Positions 19,944-24,325 of a stretch of 32,000 nucleotides of DNA are shown here, piece after piece. Source of the stretch: Wallemia ichthyophaga EXF-994 (lineage: Eukaryota > Fungi > Basidiomycota); contig NW_008806277.1 of assembly GCF_000400465.1 (NCBI RefSeq), positions 120,001 to 152,000 of the forward strand. Reading direction: 5' to 3'. The notes beneath the pieces are model-generated. The model did not search any database, was not told the DNA's origin, and saw only the letters and a list, made by a program, of their open reading frames with translations. How positions within the stretch are numbered: the stretch's first letter is position 1; every line of letters starts with the position of its first letter. Made by a program: the position numbers and the translations under genes.

Positions 19944-20806
19944 ATGAACGCACTAAACTCACTGAAAATCAACGCCAACGTTACAAACTCATTAGAGTTG
20001 TTGAAATACACTAATGGTAGAGATAAAGTGTATCGCACGGCGCAATACGCAGCACGTTTACTCGCGTGGTTCTACTCGCGCTACGGTATTCCACAGGGCA
20101 CATTCGCAGGTGTCAGTCTCGATGCCATCAAGGGTGTTTTGAGTACATCGAGGAAGCTGATGCGTCTCGGCAAGCCAGTTGAAACGCTCACAGCAGCACT
20201 CAAGACGCTCGACGGCACGAGCAACAACGACATAATCGCCAGATCGCTCTCCGTGATTAGGAACCTCAACTACACTATCTTCCTCTCTTTTGATGGGTTG
20301 ATTTGGTTACATTCTACTAAGATACGCTGCGTGCAGAAATCTACCAATGAGAGATTCATCAGAAACGCTTACACGTTCTGGGCACTCGGCTTACTCTCTG
20401 GTGTTCTCTCTGGCGCTTACAAGGAGCAGATGCTGTCGCGCACCCTCCTCAAGGCTCGTAGACAAGCTCTGAGCGATGAGAAAGATGGTAATGCTAACGT
20501 TGAAAGGGTCGTTAGGTGGGCTCTTTGCTGATTGGCGGACTTTATGCTCTTACTCACTACCTTTACAGCCAACGCGCTTCTTCACGCAAAGCCATGCTTG
20601 AAGATGCCCTCAATCTGCTCATTCCTGTTAAGGGTCTCGATCTGTTTAATATCAACGAAGGTTTCGTTGGCGCAGCAGGGTGAGTCGGAGTCTCTGGCGT
20701 ACTAATTGCTTACTTAACCAACCCCCTCAGCCTCGTTACTTCACTTATGGGCTTACAGTCCCAATGGCACTCTGCCAGCGCTAGTACGGTTACAGCTAGT
20801 AAGTAG
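19944..20806 (+). CDS. PEX11: Peroxin 11
   Basis: TNGRDKVYRTAQYAARLLAW, STSRKLMRLGK, FLSFDGLIWL, FWALGL. Two 3' introns lead to DALNLLIPVKGLDLFNINEGFVGAAGLVTSLMGLQSQW...*. Confidence 0.9.
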
Positions 20807-20939
20807 AGCTGGAATGTGAATCTTAATGAGCATCTGTACAAATATCTGATTTCAATTTCAAACATTTATCATTCCAGCGTCATGTCCTTCTTCCACTACC
20901 GAATATACACAAATACAGTTTTAGATTAGAATAGGCCGA

Positions 20940-22357
20940 ATGAGCATTATAAGTCTGGATAAATATTTTGAAGCAGCAGTATTACCTCCGCTATCACCCA
21001 GCATAATAGTGCAGTGTCTCGAGCAAGAGAAATGGCTAGTGAGGATCGGCGAGGGGTTATTGAATGCATTTCTGGTAAAATTTCCTTGGTTGGAATAGCG
21101 GGGATTGCGCACTGTCTAATGCACAATTCATAACAGCTAGACTATATCTGCTGCAACCATCCCAATTTGGACGTTGGAGCAGTCTTGATGCACCTCACAG
21201 CACCCGCGCTGCTCGCTTGTCTGCTCGACAGTCTTGGTGTGTCTGAACTCAAATCCGAGGAGCGCAAGAAGAGGGCTTTGTACGCGTGAGTGGGCGAGAG
21301 TGACCTCAGCGTTGTCTCACCGTTCTCATTTTCATTGGGGCTATCTACCGCGAACTAAGCCACGATAAACTCGTCAAGTGGCTGCACGATGTGTATCACC
21401 CGCACATTCAACTCGCTGTGCATGACCCTAAGAGGTGCACCAGCCAGGTTATCTCACTCGACGACAGCGACAGCGAGAGTGGGAGTGATGAGAGCGAGGA
21501 GAACTGGGTGCAGGCTGTAGAGGCTTCTTTCGGCGACCTTTCCATGTGCGATACTGGGGAAACCACCATGTCCTCGCAGGATAACCCCTCCCCACCCACT
21601 AGTAGTACCACGAACACCACTAAAACCTCCCCAAACAACGATTTTGCACTTACAGATCTCGTTTCTACCCTATCGAACATTGTCAACCACTTTGAAAACG
21701 ACATGGAGGATCCCTACAAGAGCGAGCGGTATCATTTCCTCAGAATACTCAGAATAAAGGCGCAGGTGCACAACACAAAGAAGGTTGATCGACCAATGGC
21801 TGAATTAGGCCTAGACGTCGGTCACCATGAGCTGCAGTTCCACGAGGCTATCCAGAGCATGCCCAGCTTCCCCTCACACTACCCACCCCCACTTCCTTGG
21901 CTTTCTGATAAAGGAATCTTTGAGACACTCACACCGCGATGTTTATACCCGAGACAGCAATCCATATTCGACAATGAGAGATTGGAGTTTCTCGGCGACA
22001 CCGTTTTGGAGACCATAGTAGTGAGTTGGTTGGGTTGCTTGTGGATTGAGAGGATTCAGACTAAATTATCATCCCCAGACAGACGCGATATTCGACAAAT
22101 TCCCTAAATACCAGCCATGGGATCTCACCAAACTTAGACGAAAGCTGGTAACCAACAACTTTTTCAGCTTCTTCAGCGATCTTTATGGATTGTTTGATAA
22201 ACTACGCGGTTCTCGCACACTTCATCCCAAGAGAAAGGCTGATGTATTCGAAGCATATATCGGTGCGCTGTACAGGGAGTCCGGACACATTTATACCAAT
22301 AAGTGGCTCGTTGAGTTGCTCGAGCCTTTCATTTTCCAGTTTGCTGAGCAGATATGA
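20940..22357 (+). CDS. Tandem RNase III domain protein (degenerate N-terminal domain plus canonical C-terminal domain, no dsRBD), about 417 aa
   Basis: Proposed exons 20940-21074, 21137-21285, 21330-22020, 22079-22357 (1254 nt, phases consistent). C-domain: NERLEFLGDTVLE...FPKYQPWDLTKLRRKLVTN...KADVFEAYIGALYRE. N-domain: EKWLVRIGEGLL...DYICCNHPNLDVGAV...KRALYAFIGAIYRE. Intron 2 needs either a non-canonical AT acceptor (21328-21329) or the AG at 21358-21359. Confidence 0.8.
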
Positions 22358-22490: not shown

Positions 22491-23145
22491 CTAGTTGTTT
22501 TGCGACCATTTGTATTCACATTTCGTGCACGTATAAAAAACAGTAGATCTGCGCGTTGTTTTGTTAGTTGATTAAGTTGCTATGCGAGATTTCTCGATAG
22601 CTCGATCGATTGAATCCTAAACTGTGTATACGCACCCTTCGTCAGCCGAGCCTGGAGGAGTATTGTCAGTAAGGGATTTATGGGAGTGGAGGGAGTGTGG
22701 TGATTGTAGCTAGTGCTACACTACCCTCACAAAACTCACGCAGTTGTAAAGTTTGGAACGTAGCCTTGTCGTGTCCGCAGCTTGGACACTTCTCATCAAT
22801 CTAAAGGACTATTGTCAGCTAAATCTGTAGTATTGTGTCATTAGTCACCTCCGCTCCCGTCGCTTTCGCACCGTCTGCAAGCGTATTCACAACGAGCGAC
22901 TTCTTGAGGTGGAGTGCGGAGGGAAATGCGTTTGGATGTGAACGCGTTTCAATGTTCAAGTTTTCGTACGCTGCGTTTTGCAATCTGATTAGCCAGTATT
23001 CGTATACCCACTTAACTCCCAACACACCTGCACCATTCTCTACTAATCCACACTCTTCACAATTTATCTTGTCATCGTCCGCTGGCGGATTGAGAAGACT
23101 CCCACAACGCTCGCAGAATAATAAACTTCCGATCCTGTTGCTCAT
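22491..23145 (-). CDS. RPA12: RNA polymerase I subunit A12
   Basis: IGSLLFCERCGSLL...CEECG zinc ribbon; four introns; IDEKCPSCGH...FQTLQLRSADEGSTVFYTCTKCEYKWSQNN* (stop 22491-22493). Confidence 0.93.
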
Positions 23146-23248: not shown

Positions 23249-24325
23249 TTACACTGATTGTTTTGCTTGATTCGTTTGGTTCGTTTGATTGTTACGAACC
23301 TGCTGGTCTGGCATCTTGAACATGGGGATCGTGCGTGTGTCGCTTGATACTTCTTGAGAAACGTGCTTGGCTTTGCTTCCAATGGCCATCTTGGCAGTGC
23401 CCTTTTCCAGCCCCTGCAGCAAGACACATGCCTTACACAGTTCGTTCGATGATATGTAACCACACCTCTGACACTTCTGTTGCTTAGGCAACGCATCCTG
23501 AACTACTTCTGATATCCGTATGTTCTCAGCAGAGTGAATAATGTCGATAATCGTAGATGGTCGCAGTGCTTCCAGGTCTTTGATATATGTTCTAGCAAAA
23601 CCTCGATACGCTTCTGGAGAATAGATACACTCTGTGGAGAAGTAGTCTAGTTTCTTGAAGTAAGCATACATGACAATTTCCTTCTCGTAAGTGTATTTGA
23701 ATGGTTTTGATCTGTTGATAGTGTCTTCTCCGCGAGTTGTTATCTCAACACACCTCCCCAGTCTGCTCACATCGCCTCTGAGGATGTTCATCAGTACTGT
23801 CTCTGCAACATCGTCCGCGTTGTGACCGGTGACGATGTGGCTGATGTTCAAACTCGATGCACCTCTATCGAGCGCCTGTCTACGGAACACGCCACAGAAA
23901 GTGCAGTTATTCTTCTTGCCTACTGCCTCCACTATACGATCCATAGTCCAGCCATAGAGCTCGTTGTAGCTGAGTATCTTGAGTGGCAATTGATACTGCT
24001 CCTTATTCCTCTTAACCGTTTCCAAACTATCGTCTCTATAGCCGGTAATACCTTCGTCAATCGATAGCAAGAAGAGCTCGAGGCCATAATCGTGTCTCTC
24101 GTTGAGTGTTTTCATAACATGCGCGAGTACTGTTGAGTCTTTTCCACCAGATGCTCCAATCGCTACGCGCTCTCCTCGTTTAAAAGTATTTGCATCGCTT
24201 ATCGTCTTGTGTATTTCCTCCTCAAACGCAAAGAAGAAGCATTCCTTGCAAACCTGCTGTCCAGTCTTTGGACGCTTAATCATTGCTCTGTTGTTGCTGC
24301 ATAGCTGACACGGCCTCGGTGGCAT
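23249..24325 (-). CDS. NCS6: Cytoplasmic tRNA 2-thiolation protein 1
   Basis: Intronless 358 aa: [90 protein letters not shown]. Confidence 0.96.

Follow-up and report, generated by a model that had tools for sequence, protein, structure and literature searches.

RNase III enzymes cut double-stranded RNA (dsRNA) as a dimer of catalytic domains, and the known routes to an asymmetric enzyme are tandem domains in one chain, as in Dicer and Drosha, and active/dead pairs, as in the trypanosome editosome. Here we analyse a gene in a 32,000-nt stretch of nuclear DNA (the window; contig NW_008806277.1, positions 120,001 to 152,000) from the halophilic basidiomycete Wallemia ichthyophaga EXF-994, whose product carries a degenerate, ligand-less RNase III domain followed by an intact one. 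Three-frame translations and splice signals place the gene on the + strand in four exons, with its ATG at 20940 and its TGA at 22355–22357. The closest database protein is TIB14474.1 (‘hypothetical protein E3P92_01917’), at 97% identity, and the deposited proteins of the family carry the labels ‘hypothetical protein’ or ‘RNase III domain-containing protein’. We find this pairing of a dead and a live domain to be real, undescribed and limited to one small fungal genus.

The window protein derives from the Rnt1/Pac1 class, with which it shares its nearest catalytic domain, a preceding [WY]PPxLPx[IL] motif and a non-catalytic N-terminal region, yet it stands outside that class by two features: Rnt1p and Pac1 have a dsRNA-binding domain (dsRBD) after the nuclease and an N-terminal domain (NTD), whereas the window protein has neither and carries instead a dead RNase III domain and a long acidic linker. 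Drosha and Dicer resemble it in holding two RNase III domains, joined by a linker, in one chain. Both of their domains, however, are catalytic and form an intramolecular dimer, whereas the first domain of the window protein is without metal ligands and Foldseek comparison of our model gave no sign of such packing; moreover, Drosha has a dsRBD and Dicer a PAZ/platform and usually a helicase, none of which is found here. The Wallemia tandem most likely arose independently of theirs. In the trypanosome editosome, KREN1-3 and KREPB form active and degenerate RNase III pairs, but as separate polypeptides of a large complex that bear U1-like zinc fingers and dsRBD/PUF domains. The concept of an active and a degenerate partner, which would cleave a single strand, is common to both cases, a likeness that would be mechanistic only; no sequence relationship between the window protein and KREN/KREPB was found. 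Bacterial Mini-III likewise has no dsRBD, so that recognition falls to the nuclease domain or to partners, but it is a single-domain homodimer without a dead twin, and the live domain here is of the eukaryotic Rnt1/Drosha type. Finally, mitoribosomal mL44/mL57 and Mucor R3B2 are ligand-less RNase III folds that serve as structural modules, as the dead domain may; unlike it, they are not fused to an active domain, and they show no specific sequence relationship to it.

Two RNase III domains in one chain

The C-terminal domain proved to be an RNase III domain, as the first-pass annotation had it. Residues 311–393 of the 417-residue model drawn there match Pfam PF00636 (Ribonuclease_3) with an E-value of 2.1e-20 and 73.8 bits (cut-off 27), over profile positions 1–101 of 102. 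Its acidic metal ligands are complete (E311, E314 and D318 in ERLEFLGD, D380 and E383 in ADVFE) and do not vary across the orthologues and the paralogue described below. Its best solved relatives by Foldseek are Rnt1p structures (5t16/4oog, 31–33% identity), with yeast Dicer (7dey) also among them, and its best non-fungal sequence matches are to Drosha, at E about 1e-17. The protein ends 34 residues past ADVFE, an end point shared by the orthologues, and a Pfam scan at E<=1 detected no dsRBD, PAZ or helicase, in keeping with the earlier description; nor did the window protein give a Pfam match to the Rnt1-type N-terminal dimerisation domain PF18497. The LPPLS and PPPLPWLS motifs and the (A)xIGAxYRE..KWL..P endings are indeed found on both domains, and PPPLPWLS aligns, via the paralogue, with WPPKLPEI of Rnt1p.

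The N-terminal domain (residues ~15–126, 20982–21423) is far more diverged. It has no significant Pfam match, the sole trace being RM44_endonuclase at E 0.01, below its threshold. When a profile built from four sequences was compared with the C-domain by hhalign, the homology that had been proposed was recovered with a probability of 95.9% (E 5e-9, 93 columns); searched against the PDB, the same profile gave weak RNase III matches (7dey, 0.006; 1o0w, 0.015). The domain modelled alone in AlphaFold2 (AF2) reached a predicted local distance difference test score (pLDDT) of 80.5 and a predicted template modelling score (pTM) of 0.74, and the best 50 Foldseek matches of this model in the PDB all have the RNase III fold, led by E. 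coli RNase III (7r97; TMq 0.69, root-mean-square deviation (rmsd) 2.6 Å, 126 columns). Because it was built on the ancestral, non-canonically spliced sequence, the model stands for the family and not for the protein that W. ichthyophaga probably makes. Besides true RNase III, it superposes on mL44 (9hcg_c; TMq 0.65, rmsd 2.0 Å) and on Mucor R3B2 (6zdw), and its fit to these two shows that an RNase III fold can outlast its ligands in a binding or dimerisation role.

At the ligand positions the N-domain reads V34, E38, R91 and Y94, as first reported, and the equivalent of E37 is K31. These positions are, with the exception of E38, non-acidic or variable also in three orthologues (L001, L002 and L005) and in two Pac1-like paralogues (P0003 and P0137). 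By profile comparison and predicted fold, then, the N-domain is a true but catalytically dead RNase III homologue. Its best-conserved part across four species is the signature helix, CLEQ[ED][KQE]WLV[RK]IG[EV]GLL[ND]AFL, and in RNase III this is the helix that forms the dimer interface. At the ball position of the ball-and-socket interface the C-domain has F315, and the N-domains have R or K in the orthologues and T or D in the paralogues. We also considered the dead domain as the yeast Rnt1 NTD in disguise and rejected this (hhalign probability 0.1%).

The two domains are separated by ~150 largely disordered residues. The acidic, Ser-rich character first ascribed to this linker was borne out, while uniform disorder was not: a conserved helical module occupies residues ~201–262 (21646–21831) and recurs in the paralogue (P0003 residues ~330–385). 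The module follows the linker and precedes the PPPLP motif, is kept in both paralogue families and has an AF2 pLDDT of 58–78. It shows an invariant R-P-M with (G/D/N)-(L/I)-D four residues on, which reads RPMxxxGLD in the window protein; RPMxxY(G/D)LD is common to both paralogues. Aligned with the yeast Rnt1 NTD, it showed no similarity (hhalign probability 0.3%). Directly after the dead domain stands VISLDDSDSE followed by an acidic and Ser run (21448–21501), matched in the orthologues by VISLDDSDSEDE, IISIDDSDDEN and VISITDSDSDFEF. This motif is kept in all orthologues and is absent from the Pac1-like paralogue, and it looks like a putative phospho-regulated SUMO-interaction motif (SIM).

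The family and its Pac1-like paralogue

Three orthologous genes, in L001, L002 and L005, encode the full protein with its dead and live domains. The dead domain is conserved in all of them and also in the Pac1-like paralogues P0003 and P0137. The notion that the window gene is a lone oddity or a substitute for Rnt1 did not hold, since the same genome encodes P0003, a 670-aa Pac1/Rnt1-type paralogue that has this dead N-domain too and is annotated in EXF-994 as ‘Double-strand-specific pac1 ribonuclease’. Its dead N-domain is 41% identical to that of the window protein and its active domain 49%; reading of its sequence gives a K/E-rich linker of ~270 residues, probably a coiled coil, and it ends in a C-terminal tail of ~125 residues. 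Its best PDB match is Rnt1p, in an alignment that takes in the WPPKLPEI/YPPPLPAL motif. P0137 is the Pac1-like protein of another Wallemia species, and its N-domain is dead at the same positions. The dead and live layout is thus a lineage feature of Wallemia Rnt1-class enzymes, and the window gene, a paralogue of the Wallemia Pac1/Rnt1-type RNase III, is restricted to the genus.

How far the dead domain extends beyond the genus was addressed with its four-sequence profile. A word-indexed search found one protein, and HMMER, run exhaustively against 1.84 billion representative proteins, gave eight matches at E<=1e-3. Five of the eight are Wallemia-like (P0121, P0137, P0138, P0139 and P0002); two are long tandem-repeat proteins, which we took as spurious, and the remaining one is a protist-like protein matched in a genuine RNase III domain. 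Across these representatives the dead domain therefore appears confined to Wallemia-like sequences. Among the best 120 matches of either RNase III search there was no other Wallemia-labelled Rnt1-like protein, and for that reason the Pac1-like paralogue is probably the cell's Rnt1 and must cut both strands. A dsRBD was sought in the tail of P0003 (residues 545–670, the position of the Rnt1 dsRBD) and none was detected by Pfam, by a PDB profile search or by hhalign against the Rnt1 dsRBD (0.7%). A phmmer alignment of the paralogue to C. jejuni RNase III reaches residue 243 of 248, into the expected dsRBD region, and some bacterial matches cover 74–83% of the paralogue query. Wallemia may be without a canonical dsRBD on either of its Rnt1-class enzymes.

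Between species, the proportion of nonsynonymous differences (pN) is 0.20–0.33 in the N-domain, 0.15–0.19 in the C-domain and 0.29–0.45 in the linker. Synonymous sites are saturated (pS 0.80–0.98), and for this reason we report pN and pS rather than a dN/dS proper. The N-domain's pN set against this pS indicates that the dead domain has been kept by purifying selection in the genus. As for novelty, the layout itself stands as undescribed, in that a literature search on Wallemia with Dicer, Argonaute, RNA interference or RNase III found nothing relevant; the broader claim of an undescribed system is tempered by the protein's descent from the known Rnt1/Pac1 class.

Introns 1 and 2 have identical position and phase in both paralogue genes, which places the internal domain duplication before the gene duplication. 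In the history that we propose, a unit of PPLPxL(S/T) motif plus RNase III domain would have been tandemly duplicated inside an Rnt1-class gene of the genus ancestor, after which the N-terminal copy would have lost all its acidic metal ligands. The gene would then have duplicated, with one copy keeping a long coiled-coil linker and a C-terminal tail, to give the 670-aa Pac1-like protein, and the other, the window gene, losing the tail and gaining an acidic Ser-rich linker.

Intron 2, strain variation and the locus

The 417-aa spliced product of the first-pass annotation turned out to lie out of reach of canonical splicing, as its join KKRALYA/FIGAIYRE needs an intron at 21286–21329 with GT..AT ends. 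The sole canonical in-frame solution is an intron at 21286–21359, giving a product of 407 aa: the first AG 3' of the lost acceptor stands at 21358–21359, 30 nt on, keeps the frame and removes exactly FIGAIYRELS. Every NCBI model of the gene (P0001, P0124 and P0126) takes the 21359 acceptor and reads RALYAHDKLVKWL. The product so spliced has lost half of the helix that corresponds to the one carrying D107 and E110 in bacterial RNase III, and FIGAI(Y/N)RE is invariant across orthologues and paralogue. Retention of intron 2 would end translation at TGA 21287–21289. No transcript-derived protein spanning intron 2 was found among the cluster members.

Comparison with the relatives makes clear what has changed. 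In L001 the junction reads CAC GC|GTGAGT..CTAAT..TTAG|A TTC ATA, the acceptor in L005 reads AACAG|T TTC ATT, and the paralogue gene (L003) has CTA GC|GTGCGT..GTCTAAT..TGCAG|A TTC ATT; in L002 intron 2 is absent and the coding sequence runs on continuously as RRSLLAFIGAINRE. The AG acceptor before TTC-AT(T/A) in L001, L005 and L003 marks the position and phase of intron 2 as ancestral. In W. ichthyophaga the acceptor is CTCAT|T and the branch site is GTCTCAC where the ancestral one is GTCTAAT, and the decayed intron is identical in all four assemblies of the species (the window, L004, L006 and L007). The ancestral acceptor has thus been lost in W. ichthyophaga and its loss is fixed across the four assemblies. 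The 417-aa protein as drawn is probably not made in this species, judging from these splice signals.

Other ways of joining the exons were tried and rejected. A splice that keeps FIGAIYRE, from a donor GTGTCT at 21239 to an acceptor at 21309 (408 aa), has a poor donor, offers no credible branch site and would cost the protein 16 residues that the orthologues conserve; a 24-nt intron at 21286–21309 is too short and out of frame. With acceptor and branch site decayed, canonical splicing would drop 10 core-helix residues from the dead domain, which would leave the N-domain probably crippled or dispensable in W. ichthyophaga. If the protein of this species acts at all, it would then do so as an RNase III with a single domain and no dsRBD. 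Its gene offers an example of a single acceptor loss that excises part of a core helix with the reading frame preserved. The coordinates of the gene are collected in Table 1.

Table 1. Exons, introns and other features of the RNase III gene, numbered by position in the window
Feature	Position	Strand	Description
Exon 1	20940–21074	+	45 codons; start ATG, LPPLS motif L15–S19, degenerate signature helix KWLVRIGE (K31–E38, 21030–21053)
Intron 1	21075–21136	+	62 nt, GTAAAA..CTAAT..ACAG, phase 0; same place in L001, L002, paralogue L003 and NCBI model P0126
Exon 2	21137–21285	+	Middle of dead RNase III domain; last residues KKRALYA; R91 (21272–21274) and Y94 (21281–21283) at D107/E110-equivalent positions
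Intron 2 (canonical signals)	21286–21359	+	74 nt, GTGAGT..AG; ancestral acceptor dinucleotide 21328–21329 is AT
Segment encoding FIGAIYRELS	21330–21359	+	30 nt, in frame, core-helix part of dead domain; now inside canonical intron 2
Exon 3	21360–22020	+	End of dead domain (HDKLVKWLHDVYHP), acidic Ser-rich tract, helical module, PPPLPWLS (21883–21906), ERLEFLGD (21976–21999)
Poly-C tract (Pro codons)	21883–21891	+	Strain-dependent length, including a +2 frameshift allele just before the catalytic domain
Intron 3	22021–22078	+	58 nt, GTGAGT..CTAAA..CAG, phase 0, within the catalytic domain; position as in L001 and L002
Exon 4	22079–22357	+	Remainder of active RNase III domain; ADVFE A379–E383 (22238–22252), YIGALYRE..KWLVELLEP, stop TGA; no other domain after it

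A comparison of start positions showed that LPPLS is preceded by just 2–14 residues in the orthologues and the paralogue. Substitutions unique to one branch are more frequent in the N-domain of W. ichthyophaga (14, against 4 on the L001 branch; p = 0.03), and in the C-domain they number 9 and 10, respectively. Strains of W. ichthyophaga differ at just 2–5 positions per 1.5 kb, and one place where they do is the poly-C tract that encodes PPP of PPPLPWLS. The window and L007 read CCACCCCCA there, L004 has a C10 run that adds one Pro, and in L006 a C9 run shifts the frame by +2 shortly before the catalytic domain. The frameshifted protein, P0124, is listed for strains E3P88 and E3P90, and its annotator bridged the shift by a mini-intron. 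Taken together, the decayed intron signals, the faster N-domain and the frameshift suggest that in W. ichthyophaga constraint has been relaxed on the N-domain and perhaps across the gene as a whole.

The upstream neighbour is PEX11 (from 19944, + strand); downstream lie a convergent RPA12-like zinc-ribbon gene (22819–23145, − strand) and then Ncs6/Ctu1 (23249–24325, − strand). The orthologues in L001 and L002, two further Wallemia-like assemblies, have the same neighbours, with PEX11 upstream and Ncs6 downstream. Read from the sequence, the locus is very compact: ~135 nt (20805–20939) separate the end of the PEX11 coding sequence from the RNase III ATG, with scant space for a separate RNase III promoter, and the first open reading frame past the convergent RNase III 3' end, that of the RPA12-like gene, lies ~460 nt on. 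NCBI models of the other strains (L004, L006 and L007; 22819–24325, − strand) give one 412-aa product with the Ncs6/Ctu1 domains (ATP_bind_3 and zn-ribbon_14) and a TFIIS-type zinc ribbon, and the presence of both domain sets suggests that these models are an annotator's fusion of the Ncs6 gene with the adjacent RPA12-like gene. The 788-aa model P0126 likewise fuses an upstream gene, PEX11 and the RNase III gene.

Pairing of the domains and meaning for the family

We give about an even chance to the reading that the window gene encodes a dsRBD-less Rnt1-class nuclease in which the dead domain is a non-catalytic interaction module, now decaying in W. ichthyophaga. The intact C-domain would be the nuclease and would need a second RNase III domain to form a dsRNA cleft. 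It would most likely find this partner in trans, in a second copy of itself or in the Pac1-like paralogue's C-domain, and its cuts would be the ordinary staggered ones through both strands. Dimerisation or the binding of RNA or protein would fall to the dead N-domain, in the manner of the N-terminal domain of Rnt1p, and, given that there is no dsRBD, the choice of substrate would rest on the catalytic domains or on a partner. We favour pairing of C-domains in trans because the Pac1-like paralogue has the same layout and, as probably the only Rnt1-class enzyme, must cut both strands; because the ball residue F315 is replaced by R, K, T or D in the dead domains; and because the full-length AF2 model shows no Drosha-like arrangement. 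In that model (pLDDT 70, pTM 0.41) only one domain is matched by the Drosha and Dicer chains, and their Foldseek scores (TMq 0.28–0.30) are at single-domain level, with an rmsd of about 20 Å over 405+ columns. None of the three grounds (the role of the paralogue, the ball residue and the AF2 model) is strong.

Several observations weigh against this reading. The conserved interface helix of the dead domain suits a live-domain partner no less than a second N-domain, and the long flexible linker would permit pairing within one chain. As for decay in W. ichthyophaga, the relative-rate signal is modest and, measured against L005, not significant (11 vs 5); the frameshift allele, lying in a C9/C10 homopolymer, could be slippage or an assembly error; and the intron 2 sequence would fit splicing at 21359, retention of the intron or splicing at a rare non-AG acceptor alike.

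One alternative is that the protein is a single-chain asymmetric RNase III, whose dead N-domain folds onto its own live C-domain as a Drosha-like pseudo-dimer with one active site. Such an enzyme would cut a single strand of a duplex, or a single arm of a hairpin, by analogy with the trypanosome KREN/KREPB pairs. Both domains have the RNase III fold, the dimer-interface helix is the most conserved part of the dead domain, the linker of ~150 residues is largely disordered, and the dead domain is under purifying selection and retained in two paralogues, all of which agree with such an enzyme. We nevertheless consider it unlikely, since the interface position equivalent to F315 is not hydrophobic in any of the N-domains, since canonical splicing in W. 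ichthyophaga drops part of the N-domain core helix, and since the Pac1-like paralogue, with the same layout, would need two active sites by established Rnt1 biology; the match of the AF2 model to Drosha and Dicer on one domain only also speaks against it, as weak evidence at this pTM. Carried over to the whole lineage, the same idea would have Wallemia reinvent a Drosha-like tandem from an Rnt1 ancestor with its first domain dead, the Pac1-like enzyme and its window paralogue both being one-active-site pseudo-dimers, and this extension we hold to be a shade less probable still.

Somewhat more doubtful again is the possibility that the W. ichthyophaga copy is decaying as a whole or already non-functional, with the family perhaps functional in other Wallemia species. 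The degraded acceptor and branch site in 4/4 assemblies, the stop that intron retention would bring, the faster N-domain evolution on this branch and the +2 frameshift before the catalytic domain (L006/P0124) would all be expected of such a gene, but its exons are all open and the downstream AG restores the frame, its C-domain has evolved at a rate like that of L001 with the catalytic residues intact, the strains are very little diverged, and the homopolymer frameshift may be an assembly artefact. Least probable, to our minds, is a regulatory subunit that forms a heterodimer with the Pac1-like paralogue via the C- and/or N-domain and tunes its specificity or localisation, with the SIM-like motif as a possible targeting signal: the paralogues do have both domains (N 41%, C 49% identity) and the mid-module RPMxxY(G/D)LD in common, the window protein is without an RNA-binding appendage and VISLDDSDSE stands in all orthologues, but a pure regulator would have no need of fully conserved catalytic residues, and the SIM assignment is a putative one.

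If the domains did pair in cis, the protein would be a compact natural dsRNA nickase of ~400 residues; and were both paralogues one-active-site pseudo-dimers, the family would be a natural fungal dsRNA nickase or one-arm hairpin cutter, and the sole Rnt1-class enzyme of the lineage would be built in this way. Practical impact is limited, the family being found in one small, genetically intractable genus. A fungal Rnt1-class lineage in which an internal duplication of the nuclease domain left a dead copy, retained throughout the history of the genus, is a small natural experiment, one that bears on the origin of tandem RNase III enzymes and on why ligand-less RNase III folds are retained.

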